Shown in pieces: positions 21,157-58,576 of a DNA stretch of 64,000 nucleotides. The notes below the pieces were generated by a model, which was not told where the DNA came from, searched no databases, and saw only the letters and a program-made list of their open reading frames with translations. Positions within the stretch are counted from its first letter, which is position 1, and the number at the start of each line of letters is the position of its first letter. Location of the stretch: NCBI RefSeq assembly GCF_016433145.1, contig NC_058132.1, positions 87,625,480 to 87,689,479 of the forward strand. The letters are read 5' to 3'. A program made the position numbers and the translations under genes. The stretch is from Gracilinanus agilis (taxonomy: Eukaryota).

Positions 21157-22107
21157 ATGGATAGCACCAACTACACATTCCACCCAACTGTCATCATTTT
21201 GAAGGCTATCCCAGGCCTGGAGCAAGTTCAGTTTTGGATCTCCATCCCCTTCTCTTCCATGTATGTGGTGGCACTTGGAGGTAACTCCTTGTTGATCATT
21301 CTTATCTGGAAGGAGCACAGTCTTCATGAGCCCATGTATATCTTCCTGGCCATGTTGGCTATGACAGACTTCTTGCTCTGCAACACCATCATGCCCAAGA
21401 TGCTAGCTCTCCTCTGGTTCCAAGCTGGATCCATTTCTTTCCAGGCCTGTATCACCCAGATGTTTTTTGTCATTTTCATCTTTGTCATGGAGTCAACAGT
21501 CCTCCTGGCCATGGCATTTGACCGCTATGTGGCTATCTGCTTCCCATTGAGATATACCATGATCCTGACCCCTTCTGTGATCTGGAAAATAGCAGGATTT
21601 TCTCTGGCCAGGGGCTTGGTCATCACTTCCCCTTTTGTTTTCCTTGTTGAGCGGCTGCCATTTTGTGGAAACAACATCATCGTTGATACTTATTGTGAAC
21701 TGACTAAGATTTCCAGACTAGCCTGTGCAGATATAACTGCCAATAACATTTACACACTAGTGATGTCTTTCTTGTCCACAGGCTTAGATGTCTTTCTCAT
21801 TTCCATCTCCTATGTGTTTATTCTTCGAGCTGTTTTCAGGCTGCCATCCCGTGATGCCCAGTTAAAGGCTTTGGGCACTTGTAGCTCACACGTGTGTGTC
21901 ATACTCATGTTTTATCTGCCAGCTTATCTGACAGTGCTAACTAGCCATCTTGGTTGTGGAGTCCTGCTAGCCAATCTTTATGTGGTTGTACCCCCTGCAT
22001 TGAATCCCATTATATATGGTGTCAGGACCAAGCAGATTCGAGATGTTGTCATATCAAGGCTCTCCCACTTGAGGGGGGAAGGAGTTCAGGAAAACCAAGC
22101 AAATTAA
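21157..22107 (+). CDS. Intact class I olfactory receptor, OR52 family (OR-A), 316 aa
   Basis: ATG at 21157 (MDSTNYT, sequon NYT). Motifs LHEPMY, MAFDRYVAIC, three ECL2 cysteines, KALGTCSSH and PPALNPIIYGVRTKQIR are present. LACADIT and AVFRLPSRDA resemble OR52B2 as recalled. Confidence 0.96.
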   Translation: MDSTNYTFHPTVIILKAIPGLEQVQFWISIPFSSMYVVALGGNSLLIILIWKEHSLHEPMYIFLAMLAMTDFLLCNTIMPKMLALLWFQAGSISFQACITQMFFVIFIFVMESTVLLAMAFDRYVAICFPLRYTMILTPSVIWKIAGFSLARGLVITSPFVFLVERLPFCGNNIIVDTYCELTKISRLACADITANNIYTLVMSFLSTGLDVFLISISYVFILRAVFRLPSRDAQLKALGTCSSHVCVILMFYLPAYLTVLTSHLGCGVLLANLYVVVPPALNPIIYGVRTKQIRDVVISRLSHLRGEGVQENQAN

Positions 22108-29446: not shown

Positions 29447-30379
29447 ATGGCTATAACCAACCAAACCACTTTCCACCCAGCTTTCATCATTTTGATGGGC
29501 ATCCCAGGCTTAGAGAAGCTACAATTCTGGATCTCCATCCCTTTTTGCTCTATGTATTTAGTATCACTTGTGGGCAACTCCTTGCTGACCTTTCTGATCT
29601 GCCTGGAACACAGTCTCCATGAGCCCATGTATCTCTTCCTGGCCATGTTGGCTATGACAGACTTCTTGCTCTCTAATACCATCATGCCAAAGATGCTTTC
29701 TCTTTTCTGGTTCCAGGCTAGGAACATTTCTTTCCAGGCTTGCATCACCCAGATATTCTTTGTCATTTTCATTTTTATCATAGAATCAACAGTCCTTCTG
29801 GCCATGGCATTTGACCGCTACGTGGCCATCTGCTTTCCATTGAGATATACGATGATCTTGAAGCCTTCTGTGATCAGGAACATTGGAGCATTTTCTGTGG
29901 CCAGAGCCCTCCTCTTCACATCCCCTTTTGTTTTCCTAGTCGAGCGGCTGCCATTCTGTGGAAATAACATCATTGCTGATACTTATTGTGAACAAACTAA
30001 GGTTTCCAGACTGGCCTGTGCAGATATAACTGCCAACAATATTTACACTCTGGTGATATCATTTCTGTCTACAGGCTTAGATGTCTTTCTCATTTCTATC
30101 TCTTATATGTTTATTCTTCAAGCTGTCTTTAGACTCCCATCCCGTGATGCCCAGTTGAAAGCTCTGGGCACTTGCAGCTCCCATCTGTGTGTCATCCTCA
30201 TGTTCTACCTGCCAGCCTACCTGACAGTGCTGATCAGCCGCCTAGGCTGTGGGGTCCTGCTAGCCAATCTTTATGTGGTTGTGCCCCCTGCATTGAACCC
30301 CATTATTTATGGTGTGAGGACCAAGCAAATCCGGGATATTATCACATCCAGACTCTCTAGGCTGGGTTTACATTGCTAA
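29447..30379 (+). CDS. Intact class I olfactory receptor, OR52 family (OR-B), 310 aa
   Basis: ATG at 29447 (MAITNQT). Full 7TM motif set as in OR-A. Many synonymous differences from OR-A. Confidence 0.96.
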   Translation: MAITNQTTFHPAFIILMGIPGLEKLQFWISIPFCSMYLVSLVGNSLLTFLICLEHSLHEPMYLFLAMLAMTDFLLSNTIMPKMLSLFWFQARNISFQACITQIFFVIFIFIIESTVLLAMAFDRYVAICFPLRYTMILKPSVIRNIGAFSVARALLFTSPFVFLVERLPFCGNNIIADTYCEQTKVSRLACADITANNIYTLVISFLSTGLDVFLISISYMFILQAVFRLPSRDAQLKALGTCSSHLCVILMFYLPAYLTVLISRLGCGVLLANLYVVVPPALNPIIYGVRTKQIRDIITSRLSRLGLHC

Positions 30380-34930: not shown

Positions 34931-35561
34931 TTATAATTCTTGTCATGCAGTCTAAATTTTCATTGTTGGGTTTTTTTTGGTTTCCATATTACATTATTGA
35001 TTGACATTAGACTTGCAGTTTGCTAAAACCCAGATATTTTTCACATGAATGGTTTATACTCACATCTTCACTGAACAATATTTTATTAGGGGAACTTTTC
35101 AATAAAGATATAGGATTCTACATTTATCCCTATCATCTGGCACCTTATTAAATTCAGTTCATAATTCTAGGTTATTATGCCATTGGGTTTTTTGTCTAGA
35201 TTCTGTCACAAAAAATGACTTTATTGCATCTGAAAGAGTGAGCAAATGACAGAATATTCAAAAAACAGAAATGTCAAAGGTTGGGAACACCTCAATAACT
35301 TGTGATTTCTCCACACCTGGAGATTATAAATATGTGGTCAAATAAATTCTTGTTGGGTTTGTTATAGAGAGGATTCAATTTTAATTGGCATATCATGTCC
35401 CATTAAATTTGTCAAATGAACAACAGATTGTTCATCATAATATTTAATGTAATAGAAATAGCCAATTCACGTATAATTAATCTCAATTTTACCTTTCTGT
35501 ACTGTTTACAAAATCCCCATCTAGCTGAGAGTACATTTTGAGAAAATTTCATCTCCCCACA

Positions 35562-35766
35562 CCCAAATAACAAGAGAGAAAAGAGTTAATTGTCCTGATT
35601 TCACTTCTTTTGAATGAGATGTGGGAGTGGCTATGAAATTCATCCCCATAGGAAATGTTTAGCATGAGCTCTTAATATAAGTGACACACAGCCTCATTGT
35701 CTTTTATACCAGAGATCCTGTCACTATAACCAAGATAAAGTTACCACACCAATTTTTCAGGTGAGT
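35562..35766 (+). promoter_or_regulatory. Candidate promoter and first non-coding exon of OR-C
   Basis: Homeodomain-like TAATTG and CTTTTGAATGA, O/E-like TCCCCATAGGA (~35643), TATA-like TAATATAA (~35673), and a consensus donor CAG|GTGAGT at 35760/35761. About 98% identical to 53111-53316. Confidence 0.6.
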
Positions 35767-37311
35767 ATCCAACTTTCTGAAGAGTAAAGAGAAAGACTTC
35801 TAATGGGGATGAATGAGTCAAAGACACATATAAAGAGGATATGATAAGAAGGAGAAAAGGATAATGAAGAAAGGAAGGGAAAATCTTGGTATGGGGAAGA
35901 GTTCAGGAGAAACAATGAGAAGATAAAGAACATTTTAGAGACAGTGATGAGAATAACATAATTTCTGGGCATAGGAATATTTTAACAGATTGGAAAGAAT
36001 TGTGGGGGGATTGAAAGAGACTGAAACAGGAAAATATTTATTGCATTGTGATGATAATAGTAGGATGTGTTGAGATAGTGATGGGAATGTAAAAACAGGT
36101 GGCAATGAGTTGAGAGAAAGTATGGGGAGAGATAAATGAGGTGAGTTAGGAAGAATAAAAAGACAATAATTGTGCTGGGCAGAGAAATATAACGACCAAT
36201 CAATTCATAGTCAATGTATCAACAAGTAGGACACTGGAATGTGCTAAATGCTATTCCCTGTACTAGTTGTTGGAAGGGGGAGAAACATAGCAATATAAAG
36301 ATACTTCCCCTCTCTCAGAACTTACAGTCTAAGTGAGGTAATTTGCAGCCATATGAACTGAAAAATAAGCAATATTTTGATACAGATGAATCCATTATCT
36401 CATTTTTGTGTCTACTCTTTGCACTGTGGCAGATTATATGTCATTAATACCCACTTTTGCTATGCACAGCAAGCAAATTTTTCTCTCATAAATCCCCCAG
36501 AGGGAGAGTGGGGGAAAAAGTCACCCAACTGGGAGAGTACTTCTAGGTCTTCAATTGGCCCATGGAAAATAGCACAATACTTGAGCTATCTACCTTTCCC
36601 TCTACCTCATTCAATGATTGACCTATATATTATTCCAAATATTAATAAAAAAGAAATTATTAATGTCCACTAAGTGGCTGTGTGGAGATGTTCCCAAAAA
36701 TACAATGAAGCATTCCTTTTTGTAAATAAACTTGCATGCTATTTGAGGAAACAATATATACAATTATAAGAAGTTACAAACTATAAACAAAAATATTTAA
36801 AGCAATTTTTGAATGAGGAATTAGTAGCTATAGAAACAGGAAATGCATTAGATAGTAAATGGTATCTGAAATGAGTTTTGAAGGAACTAAGAACTAGTAA
36901 GAGGCAAAAGTGGAATAAAATTAATTCCAGACATTAGGGATATAATGGATGAGAACTGTAAGAAGATCTGACTGACTAGGCTAAAATTGTTCATGCACTA
37001 AAGATGTAATAAATTGATTCTTTGGAATCAAGATGTGAGGAGCTTTTAATGCTAAATAGAAGATTTTGCATTCAATCTTAGAAACCTTTTTAGTAAGGAA
37101 ATAATAGTATCAGACATGTGCTTTAATAAAATTACTTAGGTACATGTCTGTGTGTGTTTATGCATTATTTAGCCATATGCATATATTGCTTAATCCTAAA
37201 TACATTTTACATATATAATAGTATAAAAGCACAGATCTGATAATGTTATATAAACAAGAAGCAATATATGTATATATACATACATATATTAACAAGAGGT
37301 AAAGAATTATC

Positions 37312-37336
37312 TGATGATGATGATGATGATGATGAT
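37312..37336. repeat. (GAT)8 microsatellite
   Basis: Direct reading. About 3 units at the paralogous site (54830). Confidence 0.9.
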
Positions 37337-38559
37337 TATAGCTTTTCAGGTTTGCAGGGTACTTTGCATGTTACATCTTTTAATGAACTAGGTAAATTAA
37401 TTGTTATTACTATCCCTATTTTGTGGGCAGGGAAACTGAGGCATAGAGAAGTTAAGTGGGTTATTTAAAGTGATGCAGCTAGTATCTGAAGCAAGATTAA
37501 AAATCAGTTTTTCCTCATCCTAGACACACTTTATCCTTTATGTCAACCAGCATCCATAGAAGCTAGCTAGTTTTTGGTATATAAATCCACAGCTTTTTAT
37601 TTAAACCCACTTTTCTTCCCACTACATGAAGTATGAGACTTGTGCCTACACAAAGGGACTTAATACTTGCGACTTGCCTTATCACATAGCTAGCATCCAC
37701 TGTCTTGGTGACTTGTTCTCTGATTTTTGCTTGGGAAATCTAGTCTTCTTTCACTATTCTCTTTGTGAACAAGCATATAATTAATGAGCTGTTCTCTCCT
37801 CTCCTAATGATTATACCATAAAGTACCAGGACTTCTTCAGTGGGAAAAAATCCCCAATTAATTCCCTGTATTTTTTTGAGGATACAAATAAGTACCCAAA
37901 GAAAAACTGTGGATTTAATATACTACAACATTCATCGACAGGTGTTGCTCAATCTTAGTATCTCTTCTATAATTACTTTTTGTCATAAGGCAATTTATAC
38001 ACATTTGTATTTTATGAGTGTATTTGGCAAAAAGGAATTGAATAAACAGAATGTTGAATTTGTCTAAGTCATGAATTTAAGAAGATAGTTTTTTATTAAA
38101 TAACTTCACATATGAAAAGGAAAAGCATTTGAGTTACTGTGAGCATGGTTGGTGATTTAGTTATAGCTTTGAGAAAGGGAATTTTTTGAAGCAAAGAATT
38201 TCTAACCTGGAGAGGACCCCTGTGGTCAAAATTGCACAAGAAAGAAAGGCAAGATCATGCACTGGATGAGTAAGGAAGATCTGAATTCATATTCAAATTC
38301 ATATGCTTAGTAGTTTGTCATTTTGGAAAAATCACTCACCCTCTGTTTGACTGAGTTTTTTCAACTGTAAAATGGGGATCATAACAGCACCTTCCTCACA
38401 GGGTTTTAGTGAGAATGGAATGATTATGTCCCATAATTCATGTCCGAAAAGTGGTCATCTGCTGGTTCAAAAGGAACACCATCCTTAAAAAGGGGAATCT
38501 ATGCTCTTCTGACCCTAATTCCTAAATCATCCCATCTAAATTTTGGTCAATTCTAATAA

Positions 38560-38740
38560 CTGGAAATAATTTCTTTAGATCATACTACTGCAGATATGAA
38601 TAACATAGAAATAGGTTTTGAAGAATGATATATGAATAACCCAGTGGAAATGCTTGTCAGATTCCAGAGCGGGGAAGAAAGAGCAGGATGAGAATCATGA
38701 ATTATGGAAACATGAAAAAATATTCTAATTAAAAAGGAAA
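38560..38740 (+). mobile_element. L1 3'UTR fragment, present only in the OR-C unit
   Basis: aataacatagaaataggttttga...acccagtggaaatgcttg...gaatcatgaattatggaaacatgaaaaaatattc. Absent at ~55940. Confidence 0.65.
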
Positions 38741-39959
38741 AAAATAAATAATTTTTTACATTAAACCTGATTAGTAACTTCTACCAATTTCTTCTAGATC
38801 TGTCCCCTAGTCACAACTCCTAACAAATGTAATTATTATTAAATCTGAAAGACATTCAAATATTTGTTAATAGCTATTGTATTTCTTACCTCTACCTCCC
38901 TCACTTGTCCACTGAAAAACAAAGCACAGAAATAACCATTCATTTTTCTGGATGTAGGTAAGAAATTATGAAATTTCATGAATTTCCATATTAGTATTGA
39001 GAGACTCTTATGGGTAATAAGGAAAACCATTTAGTGAAATCTATCACCTGCCAATGAAATCAAACTTCTCTGGTCATGAAGAGTCAAGATAAGAGGAAGA
39101 AATAAAAGATTGTTTTATGAATGGGTTGTTGAAAATATGAGATCAGTGGGTAAAGTCAAATTCAAGATCACCCATTCTGGAATAATCCAAATTATACATT
39201 TGAATTGGTTAACTTACATGTTAGGAACCATGAAAGGCAGCAGCCAGGAGTTCTTGGACTTTTTTCCCCTTTATGACATTTATTTGATATAAATTCAAAT
39301 TCAAAGATATTAATACAATGCTGGGCATTTTCAAGAAAATGACAGAAGGAAAGCTACACATTTTTATTTGCCCTCCTACAGATGATTCTCTCATGTATTC
39401 AAGGCTGGCCCTGTATTCCAACAAAGATATCATAAACAAGAGTCCTTACTAGCTTTCTTTGTCTAATCACAACATAGACCAGTGAGAGATTATAATATGG
39501 GACAGGGCAATTTGAGTTTTTGTTTTTCTTTTTTTTTTAAACCCTTAACTTCTGTGTATTAACTAATGATCTAGAGAATGTGCTGAATTCTATTCAAATA
39601 TTATCTCATTTAATTCTGGTAACAATACAGGTAAGTGCTATTATCATCTTCATTTTTGAAGAAGCTGAGGAAGATAGAGATGAAGGGGTTTCCCTAGGGT
39701 CTAAGTACTATCTAATGCACTTCTTAGCTGCCTTTGAGAAGAGCAAGATTGAAGTTAGCCAAAGAAGGTCCATGAACAAGAAAGAAAAGCCAAAGGTACT
39801 GTCAGCTTTTAGGTTGGTGGAAGAGGGAAGGGTGGAATTTATCTGCTTTGTGATTTTTCCAATCACTGATTCTGATCAGGATCACCTTGAAAGGAAATAT
39901 TCATGGTTTATTTTAAGTCTAAAAATGAAATATCAAAATAGTTAGAGGGGTGCTAAAAT

Positions 39960-40420
39960 CCAAGATGAGTTAAGAGATGGTAACAGACTACTTAGTGACT
40001 TACACTGAATCCAAGTCATAGGGTTTAGATGAGCTAAATCTCTTTATGGTGGATGACTTGGAAGATGTGATTGCTGAACTCTCAGTGCCCTTGGAAAAAT
40101 TGAGGAGTGATAGAAAGATGTTCTCAAACTTAAAATGGGTATTTTCCCCAATTTTTTAAAAAATGCGATATTATCATATTCAACTTTGACTTTAATTTTG
40201 AATAAAACTCCAGAAAATATCATTCAATGGAGGATTTTTAAGTACTAAGGCAAAGAGAAATTGACTATAATCAGTAAAAGCTATCATGGTTTTATCAAGA
40301 ACAATCCAGGAGAGACTAATCTCTTTTCCTTTATTGTAATGGTTATTATATTGTTATAACATTTTGAAAAGAATTATATAGGACAATTATAACTTAATTT
40401 CAACAAAACATTTTACAAAT
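39960..40420 (+). mobile_element. CR1/L3 reverse transcriptase remnant
   Basis: Paralog of 56386-56850. Confidence 0.7.
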
Positions 40421-40524
40421 GGTTTAATGAATGGACAAGGTGAATATATGTATACATATATAGATATGGATAGAGATATATGTAGATAGGTATATATTAG
40501 TAGATAAGATGGGTATGTCATGTT

Positions 40525-40545
40525 TTACACACACACGCACACACA

Positions 40546-40579
<34 letters not shown>
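40525..40579. repeat. (CA)n microsatellite
   Basis: Direct reading. The paralogous site (~56985) is (TACA)n-like. Confidence 0.95.
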
Positions 40580-40759
40580 AAGTAAGAACACAGAAAGCAG
40601 GAGAGACAGACAGAAGATTATAGAGAAATTAGATTAAGAAGAATTTTAATGATCAGGCAGTCAAAATAATTTGAAGATGACTTATAGTAATGTATCTTTA
40701 ATGGAGTGGAATCTGCTTTATCCTATGCTATTAAATATTTTTATAAATGACATGAATGA

Positions 40760-41100
40760 AAGCATATTCTTATAAATTTCCAAATAATGAATACCTAGGA
40801 GATAAAACTATTATACAGTTTAACATTACAGTTACAATGTAATGACAGAGCCATGGGAAAAAGGTTCAAGAGGTCAGATTTTGACCAGGTGAAAGGAAAA
40901 TCTTTCTAAAGAGCTATATGGATGTTCCATGAACTAAACTGGGAGGAAGTACTCTTTCTCTGAAGCTGGTAAGAGAAAAAAAAACAACTCAATGACCACT
41001 GGTCAATTATATTGTAGAGGAGATTCCTGTACAGTAGGGCATGGGAAAGAAGACTTCTGAAGTCATTACCAATCTTGAGTCTCCTACTCTTCAATGCATT
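40760..41100 (+). mobile_element. CR1/L3 3' end (paralog at 57330-57580; other CR1 ends near 925-1050 and 2820-3360)
   Basis: gaaaggaaaatctttctaa...gagctat...ggatgttccatgaac...ccttctct. Confidence 0.55.
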
Positions 41101-42029
41101 GAAAGGAATTACATTGCATTTAAGCAATCAATCAAACAATAAATGTTATCAAGCAAATACTATATTCTAAGTATGTGTGTGTGTGTGTTTATAGACTATG
41201 TGTGTTAATTTGCTACTGTGGAAGGTATTAAAAGCTTAAGGAAATGAGGAATGTTTCTTAAACTAAGTTTTGAGTGAACTTTGGGATCCTGAGAGTCAGA
41301 GGCAAGGAAGGAGTATATTTCGGTCATGAAAGATAGTTTTAGCAAATGCACAAAAATGGGAGGGAAATTATGAAAAAATTACATGACCAGACTCAAGCAT
41401 GTAGCAAAGGGCCTTATATATATGAAGACTGGAAAGGTAATCTGGAAAATCTGGAAAAGAATGATGTGGTATACTGAGGTTCACTAATTCACTGCATCTA
41501 GGATTCAAGGGAAGAGACTGGGGCATTTATATGAACATTATCACTTCTTGGGAATTTTGAAGAGCAGTTGTCTTTGCAGGTAAATGTTGTAATAGATATT
41601 CTTTAAGGTCCTTTCTAATAGTGAGATTCTATGATATTCTCTTCACTCATATCTAAATTAAGGAAAAGATTTTCTAGAAAATTCTCTAGAGAATTAAAAC
41701 ATGCAAATAGTAGTTCTAAAAACCAACAGGCATTTATTAATTACTTTTAACATGCCAAGTTTTGTGCCTTTCCCAACAATTAATTCTGGTGCTTTCCCTC
41801 CTATTTATCTTTTATATAGCTTGTTTGTAGATAATTGTTTCCTTGTCTTCCCCTTTAGACTGTGAGCTACTTGAAGGCAGGGACTCTTTTTGTGTCCCTA
41901 GTCCTTAGCATACTTCCTGGAACATAGTAGGTGCTTAAGAAATGCTTATTGACTGACTGATTGAATCCAATAATGTTCCAAGGGATACAAATTGTCCAAA
42001 AGGAGCACAGAAATTTCCTTGGCCAACAT

Positions 42030-42054
42030 TTTCTCCTCTTCCTCATTTCTGTAG
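42030..42054 (+). promoter_or_regulatory. Splice acceptor of the OR-C coding exon
   Basis: ttttctcctcttcctcatttctgtAG|gtgatc, 57 nt before the ATG. Confidence 0.75.
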
Positions 42055-42111
42055 GTGATCAACCTAAGGAGGAAAAGAGAAAACAACATCCTCAGATCCC
42101 ATTCTGATATC

Positions 42112-43065
42112 ATGGCTGCCACTAATCACACCTTCCATCCAGCTGTTTTCCTCCTTTGGGGCATCTCAGGTCTAGAGGAACTGCACATCTGGATCTCCAT
42201 CCCCTTCTGCACCATGTATGTAGTGGCCCTTGGAGGTAACTCCTTGTTGATCATATTTATCTGTATGGAGCACAGTCTACATGAACCCATGTACCTCTTC
42301 CTGGCCATGTTGTCCCTGTCGGACCTTTTGCTCTCCACTGCTATCATGCCCAAGATGTTGGCCATTTTTTGGTTTGAAGACAGAGTCATTTCTTTCCAGG
42401 ACTGCATCACTCAGATGTTCTCTGTCATCGCCATCTTTGTCATGGAGTCAACAGTTCTTCTGGCCATGGCATTTGACCGCTATGTGGCCATCTGCTATCC
42501 ATTGAGATATACCATGATTCTGTCCCCCTCTGTGATCAGGAAAATAGCGGGATTTTCTCTGGCCAGAGGACTGCTCATCACTTCCCCTTTCATCTTCCTA
42601 GTTGAGCAGCTGCCATTTTGTGGAAATAACATAATTACCAATACTTACTGTGAACTTCCTAAAATTTCCAGACTGGCCTGTGCAGATATCACAGCCATTA
42701 ACATTTATACACTAGTGTTGTCCTTCTTGTCCACGGGTTTAGACGTCATCCTCATCTCCATCTCATACACTTTTATTCTCCAAGCTGTCTTCAGACTCCC
42801 ATCCCGTGATGCCCAACTCAAGGCCCTGGGCACCTGCAGTTCACATGTCTGTGTCATCCTCATGTTCTACATACCAGCCTACCTGACAGTGTTGATCAGC
42901 CACATTCAGTATGGGATCCTGCTGACTAATCTCTATGTGGTTGTACCCCCTGCACTGAACCCCATTATATATGGTGTCAGGACTAAACAAATCCGGGATC
43001 ACATCATACGCAGGTTCTCCCAATTGGGCAGGGCATGCTTTGCTGGAGATGTCAGGAATAATTGA
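42112..43065 (+). CDS. Intact class I olfactory receptor, OR52 family (OR-C), 317 aa
   Basis: ATG at 42112 (MAATNHT). Full motif set and no stops. Confidence 0.96.
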   Translation: MAATNHTFHPAVFLLWGISGLEELHIWISIPFCTMYVVALGGNSLLIIFICMEHSLHEPMYLFLAMLSLSDLLLSTAIMPKMLAIFWFEDRVISFQDCITQMFSVIAIFVMESTVLLAMAFDRYVAICYPLRYTMILSPSVIRKIAGFSLARGLLITSPFIFLVEQLPFCGNNIITNTYCELPKISRLACADITAINIYTLVLSFLSTGLDVILISISYTFILQAVFRLPSRDAQLKALGTCSSHVCVILMFYIPAYLTVLISHIQYGILLTNLYVVVPPALNPIIYGVRTKQIRDHIIRRFSQLGRACFAGDVRNN

Positions 43066-43179
43066 GGTGCTTAAACTAATCTGTATCAGTCATTTTGATT
43101 TAGACATTCAAAGAAGCTGTAACCATTTGTAAAGATATTCTGACAATTGACATTAAGGGAGATTTCTTTTCTGTCAATT

Positions 43180-43400
43180 AGGCAATGAGGCTATAGAGTG
43201 GATAGAGCAATGGACCTAGAGTCAGGAAGATCTCAGTTTACATCCAGTTTACTAGAATGTTAGTTTGGCAAGTCACTTAACCTTTTCCCCCTTAGTTTCC
43301 TCAATTGTAAAAAGTGATCATCATCCCATGGTTTTTGTGACAATTCAATAGGATATTTGTAAAGTACTGGCACATGGTAGGTACTATATAAATGCTATCT
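43180..43400 (+). mobile_element. MIR (paralogous copy at 59650-59880)
   Basis: CORE consensus. Shared by both duplicated units, so it predates the duplication. Confidence 0.7.
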
Positions 43401-43582
43401 ATTGCTATTATTATTTTCATGTATAAAACAGATTAATCATAAACTTCATATATCCATACATTCTTTTTAAAATTAAATTTATATGCTATTTCACTTAATG
43501 ACCTCATTCCCCCCCAAAATTCCCTCAGGTATCATCACTAAGCAAATGTTTCTCAGATCTACTTGTCTCCATATTTGCACCT

Positions 43583-44418
43583 TGTAGCAGAATATTTGTT
43601 AGTTAATTAAGAATTAATTAGGAAATAGGATATTATTGTTGATAGACAGATAAAGAGAGAGTTGAGTGGGTTGGATTTCTTTAAGCCAGAATGGAATCTC
43701 AAAGATGACTCATGGGAAAAGAAATTTCTCAAGGAGCTTTGGGAAAGACAGTTGGACTAACGTACTCACTCTTTGAACGGTCCTGAATAAGGAAGGTTAT
43801 TTGAAGAGGCTACTCTGGAAGTTGGGAGAAATTTCTGGTGAATTTATCTCTTGAAACCATCCCAGCTGACCAGAGACCAACGTTTGTATTGTGTGCAGTA
43901 CCAGTGCCGAGCCCAGTAGGTGGCAGAAAAGAGAGAGCTGTGTGAATGGAGAAAGTTTGTGAAGATTCTGAAAGCTGCTTTTTTCATCTGAACAGCTGGA
44001 AAAGAAATCTAACTGATTCCTTTCTGATTATAAAGTTATATTTAGTATAGGATAGAAAGATAGATATTTGGGGATTTAGTTAAATAGAGAAGAATAAGAA
44101 GGATCACTCTTAGTGATCATGAAGAAATCCTTCACAGGATAGATTCTGGGGGTTGTTTGAGTCAAGATAATTTTAGAGTTACGGAATTACAATTCCTAAA
44201 CTTCCTATTTCAATATCTCCAATTTCCTTTTCCTATCATTTTTCTTATAGAGGTAAATTTAATAAATGTTTTTTATAGATTTGTCTACAGTCAAGTCTTT
44301 TCACCTACCAGTCCATCAAATTCAACTATCAACTCCCAACAAATAAATCTGTTTATAACCTAGTAATAATAGGCTATTATATCTTTAATCTACAACTGAA
44401 CAAACCCCCAAAATAGCA
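43583..44418 (+). mobile_element. Solo LTR, 836 bp
   Basis: TG...CA ends and a 4-bp TSD acct. The empty site ttgcacctcaaactcc is present in the duplicate at ~60033. AATAAA near the 3' end. Confidence 0.85.
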
Positions 44419-44419
44419 A

Positions 44420-45200
44420 CCTCAAACTCCCTATGGGACATATCAAACTGGATGTTCTATTCATATCTTTCACTTAACACAGCTCAAACTGAATTTATCT
44501 TTCTTTTTTTCCAAAACCTTCTCCTCTACCTAAATTCCCCATTTTTTCCTAATACTATCATTCTTCCAGTCATCTAGGCTCACAGTCTAAGTGCAACCTT
44601 CACTCCTCATTTTCAGTCAACTTCCAAATCCCATCAGTTGTCAAATTCTGTTATTTCTAGCTTCATAATGTCTCTTATCTATCAACTTCTTTCCTCTGAC
44701 CCTACAATCATCATGGTGTATGTAAGTTTTCATTACCTAACCCATAAAGAAACTCATAAAAGCTACCTGCCTCAGGTCTTTCTCCACTCCAGTCTGCCCT
44801 CCACTCAGCTGTCAAATTAATCTTCCCAAAACTCAGGTATGATTGAATCACACCTACCATTAAAAACAAACAAAAAGCCAGTGGCTCCCTATTACTTCCA
44901 GTATTAGATATAAAAGTTTCTGTCTGGTTTTTAAAATCCTTTAATCAGTCTCTACCAACCGTTTCCCAGTTCCCTTACACTATATTCTCATCTATATATG
45001 CTGTGATCAAGTAACACTGGTCTCATTGCAATTCCTTGCATGTGACATTCCATCTCCTGACTGCATTTTCCCTGGCTGTCCTCCACACACCTGGAATGTT
45101 CTCCTTCCTTATCTTTGTTTTCCTGGATTTCTTCAAGTCTCAAATAAAATTTCACCTTCTATAAGAAATCATTCCTGATTTTTCTAAAATTTCACTATGT
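44420..45200 (-). mobile_element. L2 remnant (paralog at 60035-60800)
   Basis: ctcaaactc...ggacatatc...tcttccagtcatctaggctcac...ccagtctgccctccactcagctgtcaaatt. Confidence 0.65.
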
Positions 45201-45747: not shown

Positions 45748-46907
45748 TAAACATTTATTAATATACATTTTTAACATGGTTACATGATTCATGCTCCTCC
45801 TTTCCCCTTCACCCCCCCCCCCGCGCTCCCCCCACCCATAGCCGATGCGCATTTCCACTAGTTTTGTCATGTGTCCTTGATCAAGACCAGTTTCCAAATT
45901 GTTGGTAGTTGCATTGGTGTGGTAGTTTCGAGTCCACACCCTCAATCACGTCCACCCCGACCCATGCGTTCAAGCAGTTGTTTTTCTTATATGTTTCCTC
46001 TCCTGCAGTCCTTCCTCTGAATGTGGGTAGCATCTTTACCATAAATCCCTCAGAATTGTCCTGGGTCATTGTATTGCTGCTGGTACAGGAGCCCATTACA
46101 TTCGATTTTACCACAGTATATCAGTCTCTGTGTACAATGTTCTTCTGGCTCTGCTCCTTTCGCTCTGCATCAGTTTCTGGAGGTCTCTCCAGTTCGCCTG
46201 GAACTCCTCCAGTTTATTGTTCCTTTTAGCACAATAGTATTCCATCACCCGCATATACCACAGTTTGTTCAGCCATTCCCCAATTGAAGGACATACCCTC
46301 CTTTTNNNNNNNNNNNNNNNNNNNNNNNNNNNNNNNNNNNNNNNNNNNNNNNNNNNNNNNNNNNNNNNNNNNNNNNNNNNNNNNNNNNNNNNNNNNNNNN
46401 NNNNNNNNNNNNNNNNNNNNNNNNNNNNNNNNNNNNNNNNNNNNNNNNNNNNNNNNNNNNNNNNNNNNNNNNNNNNNNNNNNNNNNNNNNNNNNNNNNNN
46501 NNNNNNNNNNNNNNNNNNNNNNNNNNNNNNNNNNNNNNNNNNNNNNNNNNNNNNNNNNNNNNNNNNNNNNNNNNNNNNNNNNNNNNNNNNNNNNNNNNNN
46601 NNNNNNNNNNNNNNNNNNNNNNNNNNNNNNNATAGTGGATTCATGTCCCAAAAGTTGGGCTCTTTGGGTTTATCATACACTGTCTTGCTGATGTCATTTA
46701 TCCCAAGTCTATTCCATTGATCCTCCTCTCTATCTCTTAGCCAGTACCATATTGTTTTGATGACTGCTGCTTTATACTATAGTTTCATATCTGGTATTGC
46801 TAGGCCCCCTTCCTTCACATTTTTTTTCATTATTTCCCTTGATATTCTTGATCTTTTGTTATTCCAAATGAAATTTGTTACAATATGTTTCATTAACAAA
46901 TAACAAA
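45748..46907 (-). mobile_element. Young 5'-truncated L1 spanning the assembly gap
   Basis: 17-bp TSD catattgttcatttttt (45731/46908). The 3' end is nearly identical to 8588-9274. Confidence 0.92.
46306..46631. other. Assembly gap (326 N)
   Basis: Direct reading. Lies inside a young L1. Confidence 0.99.
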
Positions 46908-50084: not shown

Positions 50085-51509
50085 TATAAGCCATATTGTT
50101 AAGGGCCTTGAGTGTCAAACAAAACAGTTTTCCTTTCATTTTAGGAATAATAGGGAGTCATAGGACTGTTTTGATCAAGGAAGTACTATAATCATATCTA
50201 TGCTTTAGGAAAAATCACTTTGGAAATTGTATTGAAGATGAAATGAAGAAGGGAGAAACTTGACATAGGTTTATCAATTAGGATGCATTTGGAGTAGTCC
50301 ATGTGGAAGGTGCTAAAAGCCTGACCCATGATAATGGTCATAAGAGTGGAAAGAAGACATGGGAGGGATGTTGTAAGGGCAGAATCAGCAAGACTTAGCA
50401 ATTGATTAGATATTGGAAAGAAGGAAAAGGTTAATGAATAAAGGTTTTGATGAACCTGTGTTATCAGAAGGATGGTGCCAGGGAAAAGAAGAAGACAAGT
50501 TAGGGAGAAGGGGCAGGTATGGTTAAGCTATGTTTCAGATAAATGTGAAAAATCATCAAAACCCTTTAAACATAGGTAATATAATTATTTTGTGTAATAA
50601 TTTACAAGGGATTCCTATTCACCTATGTATTGGTAATGACACATTTTTTCCCAAATGTCTGCCAGAAACACATTTGCTAATTGGTTGAAGATTCACTTTG
50701 CCTTTTAAAAACTCAGTTTCTTTTTCTGTTTTTTTTCTAAGGTTATATTTTTGCCTTAGTCAGTAGTGGTCACAATCCCCTTGACTGTGGCTACCATCTT
50801 TCAGTACAAGAACTTACTTGCTTCATATCTGTTCTACCTAATACATAGTAGGAGGATAGGATATTTTATAGGTGATATCAGATGTTTGACTGACCCTGGG
50901 CTCTAGTTTCCTGAGTTAGGAACACCTGCAGGACTCTGGTCCCTGCAAAACAGAAATGTCACAGTATAAAGAGTGTGTAAGCTCTTTCAGTCTATAATGA
51001 CCAACTTCAGTTACTTTGCAATTTTGTACTAGGTGACATATTCAAACATTTCTCACTCTCCTCCTATCTATTTCTCATAAAAGTCTAGCCACAAAGCCAC
51101 AAGAGAAAATTTTCTCATGGGCTTTTTTTTCCTCAATGACTTTATAGTATCACTTTAGAGAAAAATAATGGCAAGACTAGGTAGTGTTTTGTTCTTTTTG
51201 CTGTTTAATTTGTTGGTTTTTACATGTAAGTTTATGATTTTTTTCTCATGAGTTAATGCTTCTAAACCTTGTGATATCTCATTTTTTTAGGTGACAAATC
51301 CCAGAAGTGAGGAGGATAAGCAGAATACATCTGTTATTTGTCTACTATCATTGATAGGACCAATTACATTTCTAGCTGTCATCATTTTGAAGGCTATCCA
51401 AGCGCTAGAGAAATTACAATTTTGGATCTCCATTCCCTCCTGTGCTATGTATGTGGTGGCACTTGGGGGTATCACCTTGCTGATCATCCTTATCTGGATG
51501 GAGCACAGT
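50085..51509 (+). repeat. Segmental duplicate of 18970-21321 (without the 20064-20943 LTR insertion)
   Basis: Colinear similarity from gccatattgt (18975/50089) through the L2 remnant, unique DNA, the acceptor and OR TM1. Roughly 80% by eye. Confidence 0.9.
51291..51509 (+). pseudogene. Truncated OR pseudogene (copy of the OR-A 5' end; N-terminus and TM1 only)
   Basis: Aligns to 21098-21321. The start codon context tcATGgatag has become tcATTgatag (~51350), followed by a small deletion. It encodes ILKAIQALEKLQFWISIPSCAMYVVALGG...WMEHS, then homology switches abruptly to 32988 onward. Confidence 0.9.
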
Positions 51510-52425
51510 TTATATTTTACTGTTAGGGATGAAGAGGATACAATCTTTATACAACAAAAGTAAGTGTAACATAATTTCAGTAGAAAGCTCTTGTTAGTGG
51601 GATCAGAAAAGTTCCCTCTTAGTTACTGATTGATAAGATGAGCCTTGAAAAAAGCACGAATTCTAAGAGACTAGCATAAGGAAGAAGTTTATCCACTCTC
51701 TGATCAAGCCTATATGACAACATAAATAATAGGATATGGAAAGTCATGTTCAAGGAAAAGAAAGTGGGATCATTTGACTGGAATACAGAGTGCATGAGGA
51801 CAAATAATGAGAAATGTATGGAAAGACATACCAGAGCCACGCTGTAAAAAGTTTTAAATGCCAAGCTGAGTAGTTCCTATTTTATCCCAGAGGCAATTGA
51901 AGGCATTGAAGATTAACGAATGCAAGTGATGTGTTCAGATCTACTTGTGGTGATTACCAAGAAAATAAATCAAAGGACATATACTAAAAGCAAAGGGTCA
52001 AATGAAGGCCCTTTTGAATACTTATGGGCAGTATCCTGCCCTCCTCCCCCTTCTCAAATCTCATCTGTTCTCCACACTATCCACAGTCTCTTCAACAAAT
52101 TCTTATATTTATTTTGTTTCTTCAACATTCTAATAGTCATTCTTTTGAGAACTTCTAGCTTATTACTATCCTAAAAGTTGACACCCAGAACCAAACATAT
52201 TACTCTGGGTGTATCATAACTAGGACAAAAGGTGAGAGAACCACTAACTCTCTCATTTTAGTATTATACTTCTCTTAATGCAGTCTAAGTTTTCATTAGC
52301 TTTTTGGTTTCCATGTTACGCTATCGATTCACATCGGACTTGCAGTTTACTAAAACCAGTAACTTTTCACATAAATGGTTTATGGTCACATCTTCAACAT
52401 CCTATATTTGCATAGGTGAATTTTC

Positions 52426-52639: not shown

Positions 52640-53110
52640 CATAGGTGAATTTTCAATAGAAATCTAGGATTCAATATTTATCCCTATCATCTGCCATCTT
52701 ATTAAATTCAGTCCATAATTCTAGCTAATGATGTCATTGAGTTTTTTTTATCTAGATTCTGTCATATAAATGACTTTATTCCACCTAAAAGAGTGAACAA
52801 ATGAAATAATATCCCAAAAAAAGAAGTGTCAAAGCTTGAGAACATCTCGATAACTTGTGATTTCTCCACACCTGGAGAACATAAATAAGTAGTAAAATAA
52901 ATTGTTGGGTTTGTCAAAGAGAGGACTCTTAATTCCAATATTGTGTCCCATTAAATTTGTCAAATGAACAACAGATTGTTCATTTTAATACTTAATGTAA
53001 TAGAAATGGCTAATCCATGTATAATTAATCTCAATTTTACCTTTCCCTACTGTTTTACAAAATCCTCATCCAGCTGAGGGTACATTTTGAACAAATTTCA
53101 TCTCCTCAAG

Positions 53111-53316
53111 CCCAAATAACAAGAGAGAAAAGAGTTAATTGTCCTGATTTCACTTCTTTTGAATAAGATGTGGGAGTGGCTATGAAATTCCATCCCCATA
53201 GGAAATGTTTAGCATGAGCTCTTAATATAAGTGACACAGAGCCTCATTGTCTTTTATACCAGAGATCCTGTCACTATAACCAAGATAAAGGCACCACACT
53301 AATCTGTCAGGTGAGT
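53111..53316 (+). promoter_or_regulatory. Candidate promoter and first non-coding exon of OR-D
   Basis: Copy of 35562-35766, with donor CAG|GTGAGT at 53310/53311. Confidence 0.6.
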
Positions 53317-56300
53317 ATCCAACTTTCTGAAGAGCAAAGAAAAGGACTTCTAATGGGGAGAATGAGTCAAAGACACATATGAAGAGTATATGATAAGAAA
53401 GGCAAAAAGATAATGAAGAGGAAACATGGGGAAGAGTTCAGGAGAAACAATGAGAAGATAAAGAACATTTTAGAGACAGTGATAAGAATAACAGATAATT
53501 TCTGGGCATAGGAATTTTTTTAAAGATTGGAAAGAGTTGTTGGAGGATTGAGAGATAATGACTGAAATAGGAGAATACTCATTGGATTGTGGTGACAATA
53601 GAAGGATGTGTTGAGACAGTGATAAGAATATAAAAATAGGTGGGAATGAGTTGAGAGAAAGTATGAGGAGAGAGAAATGAGATGAGTTAGAAGAATAGAA
53701 AGGCAGAGAAATATAATGACCAATCAATTCATAGTCAATATATCAGCAAGTAGGATGTTGGCATGTGCTAAATGCTATTCCCTGTACTAGGAGGGGGAGA
53801 AACATAGCAATATAAAGATACTTCCCCTCTCCCAGAACTTACAGTCTAAGTGAGGTAATTTGCAGCCATATAAACTGAAAAATAAGCAATATTTTGGTAC
53901 AGATGGATCCATCATCTCATTTTTGTTTGTACACTTTGCACTGTGGTAGATCATATGTCATTAATACCCACTTGTGCTATGCACAGCATGCATATTTTCT
54001 CTCATAAATCCCCTAGAGGGAGGGTGGGGAAAAAGTCACCCAAGTGGGAGAGTACTTTTCTAGGTCTTCAAATGGCCCGTGGAAAATAGAACAATACTTG
54101 AGCTATCTACTTATCCTTCTACCTCATTCAATTATTGACCTATATCTTATTCCAAATATCAATCAAATAGAAATTATTTATGTCTATTGAGTGCTAGCAT
54201 TGTGATGTCCCCAAGAAAATAATGAAACACTCCTTGCCCTAAATTAATTTTCATGCCATCTGGAGAAACCACATACACAAATATAAGAACATACAAAATA
54301 TAAATGAAAAATATTTAAGTAATTTGGGGAGAAGGCATTAGTAGTGAGGGGAAACAGGAAATGTCTCAGAAAACAGGTGGTATTTAACATGAACTTTGAA
54401 TAAAACATGTAATATTAAGAGGCAAAACAAGATAAAATTAACTCCAGGTATTAGGGAAATAATGCATGAGAACTATAAGGTCTGACTGATTAGGCTAAAA
54501 TTACAATGTACCAAAGGTGTAATAAATTGATTCCTAGGAATCAAGATATGAAGGGCTTTTAATACTAAATAGCAGATTTTGCATTTGATTTTAGAAGTAT
54601 TTTGAGTAAGAGAACAATAGTATAAGATCTATGCTTTAATACTTTTATTTAGTTACATATATATGTATGTATATATTACTTAGCCATATGTATTTATCAC
54701 TTAAGGTTAAATATGCATTACATATATATATATATAATATTATAAAAGCACAGGTCTGATAATGTTATATAAATAAGAAGCAATATGTGTATACGCACAT
54801 GCATATATTAACAAGAAGCAAAGAGCCATATGATGATGATAGCTTTTTAAGGTTTGCAGATTGCTTTGTGTATATTACTTCTTTTGATCAACTAGGTGAA
54901 ATAAGTACTATTTCTATCACTTTTTTGTAGATAGGGAAACTGAGGCACAGAGAAGCTAAGTAGCTTGCCAAAGTTATTCAGCTAGTATCTGAAGCAAGAT
55001 TAAAAATCACTTTTTCCTAATCATAGGCACCACACTCTAACCTCTATGTCATACAGCATCCTTAGTAGCTAGCTAGCTTTTGGCACATGAATCTGGGGCT
55101 TCTGATCTAAACCCACTCTTCTTCCCACTACATGAGGTCTGAGGCTTGTGACAACACAAAGACAATACTGGCAACTTTCCTTAGCACATTGCTAGCATCC
55201 ACCAAATTGATTATTCTCTGGCTTTTGCTTGTGAAATCCAGCCTTCCACTTTTCTCTTTGTGAACAGTGATCTAATGATTATACCATGAAGTACCAAGAC
55301 TTCTTCAGTGAGAAAAAAATTCCCAATTAATTCCCTAGTTTTTGAGAACATAAATAAATACACAAAGAAAAACTTTGTGGTTTTAATATACTACAATATT
55401 CATTGACAGGTCATTGGTGCAATCTTAGTATCTCTTCCACTATTACTTTTTTGTCATAAGGCAAGTTTATACACAGTTGAATTTTTCTGAGTGTATTTGA
55501 CAAAATGGAATTGAATAAATAGAATGGTGAATTTGTCCAAGTCATAAATTTAAGAAGATGTTTTTATTAAATAACTTCATATGTGAAAAGGAAAAGCATT
55601 TGAGTTGCCATGAGGCTGGTTGGTGATTTGGTTACAGCTTAGAGAAAAGAAATTTATTGAAACAAAAAATTTCTGACCCAGAAGAGACCTCAGAGGCCAT
55701 AACTACAGAAGAAAGATGAGCAAGATCGAGCACTAGACCTAGAATTAGTAAGATCTGAGTTCACATTCAAACTCATATACTTAATAATTTGTCATCCTGG
55801 ATAAATCACTAAACCTCTGTTTGACTTAGTTTCTTCAACTGAAAAATGGGGGGTCATAATAGCACCTACTTCATAGGGTTTTTGTAAGAATGGAATGAAA
55901 GTATATGTCCCATAATTCCTCTCTGACAAAAGGTCATTTGCTGGTGAGCCCATCCAACTTTTGGACAGTTCTAATATTTAGAAAAAATGTCTTTATATTA
56001 AACCTAATTTGTAATTCCAACCAATTTCTTTTACATTTGTCTTTGGATCACAATACCTAACAAATGTAATTATTCTTAAACCTGAAAGATATTCTAATAT
56101 TGAGATTGTATCTCTCACTCTCCCTCACTCCCTTGTCCATCTGAATAACAAAACAGAGGAATAACCATTCATTTTTCTGGATATAGGTAAGAAATTATGA
56201 AATTTCATGAATTTCCATATTAGTATTGAGAGCCTCTTATAGGTAACCAGGAAAAATACTTAGTGAAATCTATCACCTGCCAATGAAACCAAACTTTTCT

Positions 56301-56385
56301 GGTCATGAAGAGTCAAGAGAAGAGGAAGAAATAAAAGATTTTAAGGTGAAGAAAGATATAGCAAAATAGTTAGAGGGTACTAAAA

Positions 56386-56850
56386 TTGAAGATGAGTAAA
56401 GAGATGGAAACAGACTACTTAGTGACTTACACTGAATCCAAGTCACAGAATCTAGATGAGCTAAATCCCTTAATGGTAAATGATTTGGAAGATGTGGAAG
56501 CTGAACTCTCGGTACCCTTTGAAAAATTGAGGAGTGATAGAAGTCCTCAAACTGGAAATGAGTATTTCTTCCCAATTTTTAAAGAACAGGAAAGGTTGTC
56601 CTATTCAACCTATGGACCAATGAATTTGACTTTAATTCTGAACAAAACTCTAGAAAATATCATTAAAGTGAAGATTTTTAAGCAGTGAGGTAAAGTGAAA
56701 TTGATGATAATCACTAAAAGCAATCATAGTTTCATCAAGAACAATCCATGAGAGACTAATCTCATTTCCTTTTTTGTAACAGTTATATTGTTATAACATT
56801 TATTATATATGGCAAGTATACCTTAATTTTATAAAAACATTTTACTAATG
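56386..56850 (+). mobile_element. CR1/L3 reverse transcriptase remnant
   Basis: KSQNLDELNPLMVNDLEDVEAELSVPFEK...FPIFKE...YGPMNLTLILNKTLENIIK resembles CR1 ORF2 [30 protein letters not shown]...NYRPVSLTSIPGKILEQIIK. Confidence 0.8.
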
Positions 56851-58494
56851 ATTTATTTAATGGACAAAATGGATATATATATGTATATATATATATGTAT
56901 ATATATATATATAATTTGGATCTAGATATATGCATATAGATATACCTTAGTATATAAGATGGCTATGTCATGTTTTTTATTTATACATACATATATGTAT
57001 ACATACATACATATACAAATAGATAAACAGAGGCACACCAGAAAGAGACAAAGAAAGGATTATAGAAAAATTGGACTGATTAAGGAGTATTTAAGTGACC
57101 AAGTTTAAACAGCGGTCAATGTAATTTGAAGGTTCTAGAGAGGTAACTTTAGATCAGTGGAATAAGCCCTTTATCTTACATTATAAAATATTTTTATACA
57201 TGACATGAATGAACACGTATTCCTATAAATGTCCAAATAATGAATACCTAGGAGATAAAACTATTATACAGTTTAACAAGTTAAGATCTACAAAGATCTA
57301 TCTCATTAGAATAGAATGCCAGAACCATGGTGAAAAAGTTGAAGGGGTAAGATATTGGCCTGGTGAAAGGACAATCTTTCTAAAGAGCTATGTGGATGTA
57401 CCATGAACTAAATTGGGGGAAAGTGCCCTTTCTCTTGAGATACTAAAAGAAGAACACTGTAAGATCATTTGTCAGTTATATTATAGAGGGGATTTCTGTT
57501 CATCTAGGACATGTGAAAGAAGACCCCTGAATTGCTTACAAACCTTAAATCTGTTATTCTTCAATGGCTTGAAAGGAGTTAGAATGCACTTAAACAATCA
57601 GTCAAACAACAAATGCTGTCAAATACTCAGTTACAGGTACAAATCTAGGTGCTAGTGAAACAAAGATACAACATATATGTACATATGTAACCATAGACTA
57701 TGAATGTTAAAGCTGAGGGAAATTAGGAATGTTTCTTAAGCAAAGTTTTGAGGGAACTTTGGGATTCTCAGAGGCAGAGATGAGGAAGGAATATATTCCA
57801 GACATTAGAGATAGTTTTAGCAAATGCACATAAATGGGAGGTACATTACTAAAAATTATGTGGCCAGACTGGAGCATGTAGCAAAGGGCTTTATATATAA
57901 GACGGCTGGAAAGGTTCAGGAAAAGAATAAATTAGCATAGAGGGGTTCATAAAATAAAATGCATCTAGGATTCAAGGGAAGAGATTTTAGATATTTATAT
58001 GAAACTATAATTTTTGGGGAATTTTGAAGAGCAGTTGTCCTTACAGGTAAATGTGATACTAGATGTTCTTTGAGGTCCTTTCTTAATGTGAGATTTTATA
58101 TTCTCTTCCCTCATCTCTAGATACAGAAAAAAGATTTTCCAGAAAATTTTCTAGAGAATTACAACATGCAAATAGTAGTTCTAAAAATTCATAGGCATTT
58201 ATTAATTGCTTTTAAAGTGCCAAGTTTAGTGCCTTTCCCAACAATTAATTCTAGTGTCTTCTATCCTATTTATCTTTTATATAGGTTGTTTATAGATAAT
58301 TGTTTCCTTGTCTTCCCCTTTAGACTGTGAGCTACTTGAAGGCAGGGACTCTTTTTGTGTCCCTAGTCCTTAGCATACTTCCTGGAACATAGTAGGTGTT
58401 TAAGAAATGCTAATTGACTGACTGATTGAATCCAATAATGTTCCAAGGGATACAAATTGTCCAAAAGGAGCACAGAAATTTCCTTGGCCAACAT

Positions 58495-58519
58495 TTTCTC
58501 CTCTTCCTCATTTCTGTAG
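58495..58519 (+). promoter_or_regulatory. Splice acceptor of the OR-D coding exon
   Basis: Identical to the OR-C acceptor. Confidence 0.75.
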
Positions 58520-58576
58520 GTGATCAATCTAAGGAGGAAAAGAGAAAACCACATCCTCAGATCCCATTCTGATATC

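Follow-up and report, generated by a model that had tools for sequence, protein, structure and literature searches.

A marsupial clade of OR52-derived odorant receptors with a replaced class I carboxylate-binding site

A 64,000-nucleotide stretch of the Gracilinanus agilis genome (assembly GCF_016433145.1, contig NC_058132.1, positions 87,625,480 to 87,689,479 of the forward strand; hereafter the window) carries four intact class I odorant receptor (OR) genes, which we call ORA, ORB, ORC and ORD, and in which the residues that hold carboxylic acids in related receptors are replaced. The four belong to a clade that comprises 19 non-redundant proteins and spans 10 marsupial species, and our sequence comparisons show that the replacement pattern is an ancient, clade-wide marsupial trait, present in three orthogroups and reaching beyond these four genes. 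On balance we think it probable that the clade is a functional, marsupial-specific subfamily derived from OR52, in which a carboxylate clamp and an activation latch have been dismantled together with a shortening of the third extracellular loop (ECL3), and which probably no longer binds canonical fatty acids and serves another class of odorants. Loss of the canonical clamp is well supported, since the pocket that replaced it is itself conserved, with ratios of non-synonymous to synonymous substitution (dN/dS) of 0.09–0.27. Because the acid-site residues are replaced while the G-protein-coupling motifs remain intact and the genes are under purifying selection, a shift away from canonical fatty-acid binding is the best reading of these data. 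The initial annotation of this DNA had proposed such a shift, towards a new ligand class; the replaced clamp and the conservation of the pattern support the departure, and the new ligand class is something we infer from the residues.

The class I carboxylate site in four Gracilinanus receptors

ORA (positions 21157–22107 of the window, 316 amino acids), ORB (29447–30379, 310 amino acids), ORC (42112–43065, 317 amino acids) and ORD (58577–59530, 317 amino acids) are uninterrupted, intronless open reading frames with ATG starts, all on the plus strand. Their products score 292–318 bits against Pfam 7tm_4, for which the curated cut-off is 27 (E = 4.4e-89 for ORA), and all four have the OR signature of PMY, MAFDRY, KAxxTCxSH, FYxP and PxxNPxxY motifs and an N-terminal NxT site. 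The closest solved relative of ORA is OR52cs, a human OR52 consensus receptor whose structure is available with octanoate (PDB 8HTI) and in apo form (8J46 and 8W77); the two share ~60% identity (E = 1.4e-109, 370 bits). OR51E2 with propionate (PDB 8F76; E = 1e-80, 275 bits) and consOR51 are also among the best solved relatives, and class II consensus ORs reach about 170 bits or less. An AF2 (AlphaFold2) model of ORA, built from a 69-sequence alignment in which the cysteines C170, C180 and C190 of the second extracellular loop (ECL2) are invariant, has a mean predicted local distance difference test score (pLDDT) of 82.4 and the same fold as OR52cs, superposing on 8hti_R with TM scores of 0.84/0.87 and a root-mean-square deviation of 2.7 Å. 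By overall similarity (~370 bits to OR52cs versus ~170 to the class II consensus ORs) the clade is class I, and ORA to ORD are class I odorant receptors of the OR52 family by descent.

The functions of the replaced residues are known from structural and mutational work on these relatives. In OR52cs, whose published numbering we checked to be the index of the deposited sequence minus 10, the octanoate carboxyl is held by R265 (position 6.59, at the tip of transmembrane helix 6, TM6) and H183 (45.52, in ECL2); the R265A mutant does not signal. G201 (5.39) is within 4 Å of the carboxyl, and G201V, which clashes with it, abolishes octanoate signalling, while H107 (3.33) and F261 (6.55) pack the octanoate chain. 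In the active state TM6 has shifted inward, with H264 (6.58) bonded to E182 (45.51) and H275 (7.33). In OR51E2, which shares the class I architecture of the clade and binds its ligand between TM3, TM4, TM5, TM6 and ECL2, R262 (6.59) is the counter-ion; mutants of R262, H104 (3.33), G198 (5.39), I202 and S258 (6.55) lose the propionate response, and inward movement of R262 and ECL3 is enough for activation. Of the human class I ORs, 71% have Arg 6.59. The propionate pocket of OR51E2 had been given in the initial annotation as H104, H180, G198 and R262; the source names three of these and does not name H180, whose OR52cs equivalent, H183 (45.52), does contact the carboxyl.

The sites of acid recognition are altered in the four genes of the window. 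In ORA, TM3 reads FFVI (21463–21474, plus strand, as are all motifs given here), with Ile in place of His 3.33, and TM5 reads IYT (21748–21756), with Thr in place of Gly 5.39. The ECL2 motif DTYCELTK (21685–21708) stands for HTYCEHMG, turning the ECL2 His into Asp, H45.52 into Leu and G45.54 into Lys, and the TM6 tip reads SHLG (21943–21954) for HRFG, with Ser for H6.58 and His for R6.59 and a six-residue deletion in ECL3 directly 3′ of it. The corresponding TM3, ECL2 and TM6 motifs are FFVI (29756–29767), DTYCEQTK (29978–30001) and SRLG (30236–30247) in ORB, where the Arg codon at 6.59 is CGC (30239–30241); FSVI (42418–42429), NTYCELPK (42640–42663) and SHIQ (42898–42909) in ORC; and FSVI (58883–58894), NTYCELPT (59105–59128) and SHLH (59363–59374) in ORD. 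Thus R6.59 (with Arg present in ORB), H45.52, G5.39 and H3.33 are replaced in all four genes, as is the H6.58–E45.51–H7.33 latch. The TM3, ECL2, TM5 and TM6 motifs had been picked out in the initial annotation, and each was located at the expected coordinates; the range it assigned to them, 21455–21775, covers TM3 to TM5 of ORA and leaves the TM6 motif outside. Its statement that the activation motifs are unchanged also holds, since PMY, MAFDRY, KAxxTC and PxxNPxxY are intact in the four genes and the ECL2 cysteines are invariant.

Residue frequencies across the family show how far this pattern departs from that of its relatives. Among the 82 nearest non-clade OR52 proteins, the ECL2 His three residues before Cys 45.50 and H45.52 are each present in 100%, and in the 19 clade members they have become Asp (15), Asn (3) or Glu (1), and Leu (8), Gln (8) or, in the remainder, Met, Ala or Glu, respectively. 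G5.39 and R6.59 are likewise found in 82/82 relatives (100%) and have given way to Thr (18) or Ile (1) and to His (15), Gln (2), Asn (1) or Arg (1). Conservation in the relatives is nearly as high at H3.33 (96%, 79/82; clade Ile 18, Thr 1), H6.58 (94%; Ser 17, Asn 2), H7.33 (98%; Gly 16, Val 2, Ala 1), G45.54 (96%; Lys 17, Thr 2) and F6.52 (94%; Tyr in all 19). The combination HHGR at the four core carboxylate positions occurs in 79/82 relatives and in 0/19 clade members. Sites that are 94–100% conserved in the relatives have therefore changed in the clade, and the changes are concentrated in the pocket: the clade consensus differs from that of the relatives at 14/19 literature-defined pocket positions versus 87/262 others (Fisher p = 7.6e-4). 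At 13 OR52cs pocket positions, clade members match OR52cs at 1–2 (only F4.60) despite 56–62% overall identity, and the relatives match at 4–9 (median 7).

The full set of changes is confined to the clade in every sample that we compared. All 26 human OR52 receptors retain H3.33 and at least 4/13 (30.8%) of the OR52cs pocket matches (PMC10703812 table). In 59 further OR52 proteins one change or two turn up here and there (single ones at 6.59, 5.39 or 3.33), with the full pattern in 0/59 and a short ECL3 in 0/59. The combined pattern, fixed in the marsupial clade, is thus present in 0/141 other OR52 proteins and 0/26 human OR52s. One of the two outcomes that the initial annotation had named as overturning its proposal, that the substitutions are common across OR52B orthologues, accordingly does not apply.

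The clade and OR52cs remain alike in PMY, MAFDRY, KAxxTC-SH, FYxP, NPxxY, the ECL2 cysteines, F4.60, Y45.49, E45.51 and Y7.41. In contrast, the residues R265, H183, G201, H107, H264 and H275 of OR52cs are all replaced, and six residues are missing from the clade where OR52cs ECL3 has HHIPPY. R262, H104 and G198 of OR51E2 similarly have no clade equivalent, and its S258 corresponds to Val. Several human receptors (OR52B2, OR52N1, OR52E6, OR52A4 and OR52I1/I2) resemble most clade members in lacking Arg 6.59, OR52B2 and OR52N1 having His there. Unlike the clade, however, all of these retain H3.33, all but OR52A4 retain H45.52, all but OR52I1/I2 retain G5.39, each has a full-length ECL3, and each matches at least 4/13 OR52cs pocket positions rather than 1–2. 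Class II ORs (consOR1, consOR2, consOR4) resemble the clade in having no conserved Arg 6.59 and an ECL3 shorter than that of class I. Their conserved contact between Tyr 6.55 and Asp/Glu 45.51, found in receptors for neutral volatiles, is not present in the clade, which has Val at 6.55 (Val 18, Leu 1) and a new Tyr at 6.52. The clade therefore carries neither the carboxylic-acid hallmark residues (Arg 6.59, His 45.52, Gly 5.39 and His 3.33; its sole Arg, in ORB, is derived) nor the class II pair.

The pocket that results is I3.33, F3.36, V/I3.37, F4.60, L/Q45.52, T5.39, S5.43, S5.46, T5.47, Y6.52, V6.55, S6.58, H6.59 and G7.33. This string is nearly invariant in the clade, with most of the variation at 45.52 (Leu or Gln), 5.42 and 6.59. 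Not every difference from OR52cs is a novelty of the clade. A bulkier pocket floor, suggested by Phe for T3.36 and Val for G3.37, was rejected because the 82 relatives already have F3.36 and I/A/V3.37; Thr-Gly at 3.36/3.37 is a peculiarity of the human consensus. S5.46 and T5.47 were set aside likewise, as natural relatives have the same residues.

Both HMMER and MAFFT alignments make the clade ECL3 six residues shorter, with the deletion just past the TM6 tip. The segment from 6.59 to 7.41 has 10 residues in the clade, against 16–17 in class I-like and 12–15 in most class II-like members of a sample of 93 OR domains from a representative library, of which the clade ECL3 is the shortest. The ORA model has TM6 as far as residue 262 and the loop at residues 263–267, a region where the confidence of the prediction is moderate (mean pLDDT ~69 for residues 261–270).

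A marsupial clade and the constraint on its new pocket

A word-index search of 5.8 billion proteins returned sequences at 76–89% identity from marsupials only, with the next matches at 60% or below. Besides Gracilinanus, the clade includes genes of Sminthopsis, Sarcophilus, Macrotis, Vombatus, Notamacropus, Trichosurus, Petaurus, Phascolarctos and Monodelphis. When residues 170–290 (ECL2 to TM7) alone were used as the query, clade members scored 202–241 bits and no other protein exceeded 153 bits, except for three multi-domain artefacts. No other close family emerged when 1.84 billion cluster representatives were scanned exhaustively with HMMER. A literature search on marsupial class I and OR52 receptors found no description of the 19-protein clade.

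In a quick maximum-likelihood tree of 102 sequences, the 19 proteins group with full support (SH-aLRT, the Shimodaira-Hasegawa-like approximate likelihood ratio test, 100) on a stem of 0.67 substitutions per site, which is the longest inner branch and near saturation. OR52D1, OR52Z1 and OR52 genes of sauropsids surround the clade, the sauropsid 'O52B2' group stands separately, and the sister group of the clade is formed, with moderate support (SH-aLRT 90), by Sphenodon P0051 and Podarcis P0061. NCBI names for clade proteins are '52B2-like' or '52Z1P-like'; orthology to human OR52B2 is not supported, since the tree, whose sample contains no eutherian OR52B2, places the clade beside the Sphenodon and Podarcis genes. 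The proposal in the initial annotation that the change to His at 6.59 is inherited accordingly finds no support in this tree, even though its observation that human OR52B2 has His at the Arg position agrees with Supplementary Table 5 of PMC10703812.

Within the clade, orthogroup A unites ORA with dasyurid, bilby, wombat and wallaby genes, orthogroup B unites ORB with wombat, possum and glider genes, and orthogroup C/D contains ORC, ORD and two Monodelphis genes, with koala, bilby, glider and wallaby genes as their sister group. Since didelphid and australidelphian genes occur in each of the three orthogroups, the remodelled receptor is older than the split between American and Australian marsupials, which took place ~80 million years ago. 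ORD is by its sequence a recent tandem duplicate of ORC (synonymous divergence dS = 0.18).

Divergence estimates by the Nei-Gojobori method, with orthologue coding DNA from Sminthopsis, Vombatus, Trichosurus and Monodelphis, gave dN/dS of 0.14–0.27 among the four paralogues and 0.09–0.24 between orthologues. For 22 pocket and ECL2 codons in the A and B orthologue pairs, 1–2 non-synonymous changes were counted versus 3–5 synonymous ones. These substitution patterns indicate purifying selection on the genes and strong constraint on the new pocket, and they argue against relaxed constraint.

ORB is the sole clade member with Arg at 6.59, where the other 18 have His, Gln or Asn. The ORB orthologues of Vombatus, Trichosurus and Petaurus have His; the codon is CAC in the Trichosurus orthologue and CAC or CAT (His) or CAA (Gln) in the other clade genes sampled, as against CGC in ORB. 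Since the orthologues and all 18 other members are without Arg and the sampled genes have codons of this kind, the ORB residue can be derived by one transition, and it is most likely a regain through a single A-to-G change in the Gracilinanus lineage. The initial annotation had stated that only ORB keeps the Arg: CGC at 30239 does encode the one Arg among 19, and the polarity is the reverse, with CAC to CGC making it derived.

The ECL2 Lys at 45.54 had been put forward as a possible substitute charge, a suggestion that now looks weak. The residue lies two positions past 45.52 in a predicted short helix of the ORA model, and it accompanies the Asp or Glu at the former ECL2 His position: the pairs are Asp/Glu-Lys in 16 of the 19 proteins, Asn-Lys in 1 and Asn-Thr in 2 (ORD and Monodelphis P0018). 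Although this co-occurrence represents one apparent evolutionary change, it suggests that an Asp/Glu-Lys pair within the loop is at least as likely as a counter-charge for the ligand.

Ligand class and competing readings

We propose that the clamp was dismantled on the stem of the subfamily, before didelphids and Australian marsupials diverged. The acid-holding Arg at the TM6 tip (6.59) and His of ECL2 (45.52) would have been lost, Gly 5.39, which leaves space for the acid group, would have become Thr, and His 3.33, which packs the chain, would have become Ile. Both His residues of the His 6.58–Glu 45.51–His 7.33 latch, which holds TM6 inward, would also have gone, along with six residues of ECL3, and the pocket thus formed has since been kept by purifying selection in the three orthogroups. 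The ligands of the clade are probably uncharged odorants, bound through hydrophobic and hydroxyl hydrogen-bond contacts, and signalling would proceed through the usual G-protein machinery of ORs. A bolder version of this proposal, which we rate at a little under even odds, is that a marsupial class I lineage left the carboxylic-acid niche and has for ~80 million years or more been tuned to another, conserved class of ligands, such as semiochemicals that are neutral or peculiar to marsupials, with a hydroxyl-rich TM5/TM6 pocket, the shortest ECL3 sampled and possibly TM6–TM7 coupling that dispenses with the Arg/His latch.

Several points weigh against a departure from acids. Our comparison set consists of the nearest relatives rather than of all class I receptors, and ~29% of human class I ORs are without Arg 6.59. 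Human OR52B2 has His at this position and is nevertheless named among acid-responsive receptors in the OR52cs literature, so Arg 6.59 by itself is not indispensable, and a carboxylate could conceivably still be bound by His 6.59 together with Lys 45.54. Where the ECL3 gap falls also depends on the alignment: it comes after the G of SHLG against OR52cs and consOR51 and over the HRFG equivalent ('hrfgn') against OR51E2. Given this ambiguity we assigned 6.58 and 6.59 by counting residues from Tyr 6.48 without gaps, which puts His, or Arg in ORB, at 6.59.

His 6.59 and Lys 45.54 lead to the alternative that the clade still consists of carboxylic-acid receptors, in which the acid is held by His 6.59 (Arg in ORB) and the new Lys 45.54. 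The precedent of OR52B2, the presence of Lys 45.54 in 17/19 clade members where 96% of the relatives have Gly, and the regained Arg of ORB speak in its favour, yet we regard it as unlikely. OR52B2 retains H3.33, H45.52 and G5.39 (Supplementary Table 5, PMC10703812), whereas the clade has lost all three, and Thr 5.39 resembles the G201V mutation that abolishes octanoate signalling in OR52cs. Lys 45.54 probably faces elsewhere, given its predicted place in the helix beyond 45.52, and it pairs with the new ECL2 Asp. Moreover, a position that may be His, Gln, Asn or Arg does not behave like an essential counter-ion. It is also conceivable, but in our view improbable, that activation rather than ligand choice has changed: the short ECL3 would tie the tips of TM6 and TM7 together and replace the ligand-dependent Arg/His latch, giving high basal activity or a lower threshold. 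Activation of OR51E2 by inward movement of R262 and ECL3 alone, the loss in the clade of both His residues that latch the inward TM6 of OR52cs through H264–E182–H275, and an ECL3 shorter than any other in the sample are consistent with such a change; the argument is purely inferential, the loop is modelled at a pLDDT of only ~69, and the strong conservation of the new pocket implies that ligand contacts still matter.

That the pattern reflects nothing but the ordinary variability of OR pockets, or relaxed constraint on genes that are drifting or becoming pseudogenes, seems very improbable indeed. No part of the OR family varies more than its binding pockets, and both the human class I receptors that do without Arg 6.59 and the sporadic single changes at 6.59, 5.39 and 3.33 in other OR52s show that individual sites can vary. 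Against this, all four reading frames are intact with low dN/dS, the new residues are nearly invariant in 19 proteins from 10 species, and the combined changes occur in none of the other OR52 proteins compared, human or otherwise.

Recent structures of OR51E2, OR52cs and consOR51 have led to a model for class I receptors in which Arg 6.59, with a small set of conserved partners, recognises the carboxylic acid, and the ligand activates the receptor by drawing TM6 and ECL3 inward. The marsupial clade offers a natural case, tested by selection, in which the whole acid-recognition set appears to be gone and ECL3 is short while the receptor is intact, and it bears on which parts of that model are obligatory, on what changes suffice to retune a pocket and on how ECL3 length relates to basal activity. 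If the clade has indeed moved to other ligands, it would provide a natural exception to the equation of class I receptors with acids, and a ready template for re-engineering class I pockets; for marsupial biology it points to a lineage-specific chemosensory channel. We consider this significance moderate, since a gene family of this kind is expected to produce lineage-specific OR subfamilies whose pockets diverge.

Genomic setting of the four genes

ORC and ORD lie with their 5′ flanks in a tandemly duplicated block of ~8–10 kb at 82–86% identity (window 35087–44868 and 52642–60494), and in a blastn self-comparison of the window ORA and ORB have only their coding regions in common with the other genes. 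Between the ORC and ORD units, at 51375–51515 on the plus strand, is a relic of an ORA-like N-terminus (residues 11–57, 74% identity) that ends past TM1, with stop codons beyond it. Between ORC and this relic lie 326 N (46306–46631), either an assembly gap or a masked stretch. The start of a further olfactory receptor gene, from the N-terminus to TM1 and 42% identical to ORA, occupies positions 1–120 on the minus strand and is truncated by the start of the window. The protein search returned entries for ORB, ORC and ORD and none identical to ORA (best match 89%), which may be unannotated in the assembly.

In Monodelphis domestica, protein searches recovered only C/D-type clade genes, two of them, ~15 kb apart on one chromosome; the same searches gave no Monodelphis orthologues of A or B, both of which Gracilinanus has kept; they may have been lost, have decayed to pseudogenes or be absent from the annotation. 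A canonical OR52 gene (L001:18791-19744), in which HTYCEH, YG and HRFG are all present and ECL3 has its full length, lies 8 kb downstream of the ORA orthologue in Sminthopsis crassicaudata. As the corresponding neighbour in the window is ORB, clade genes are interleaved with ordinary class I genes.

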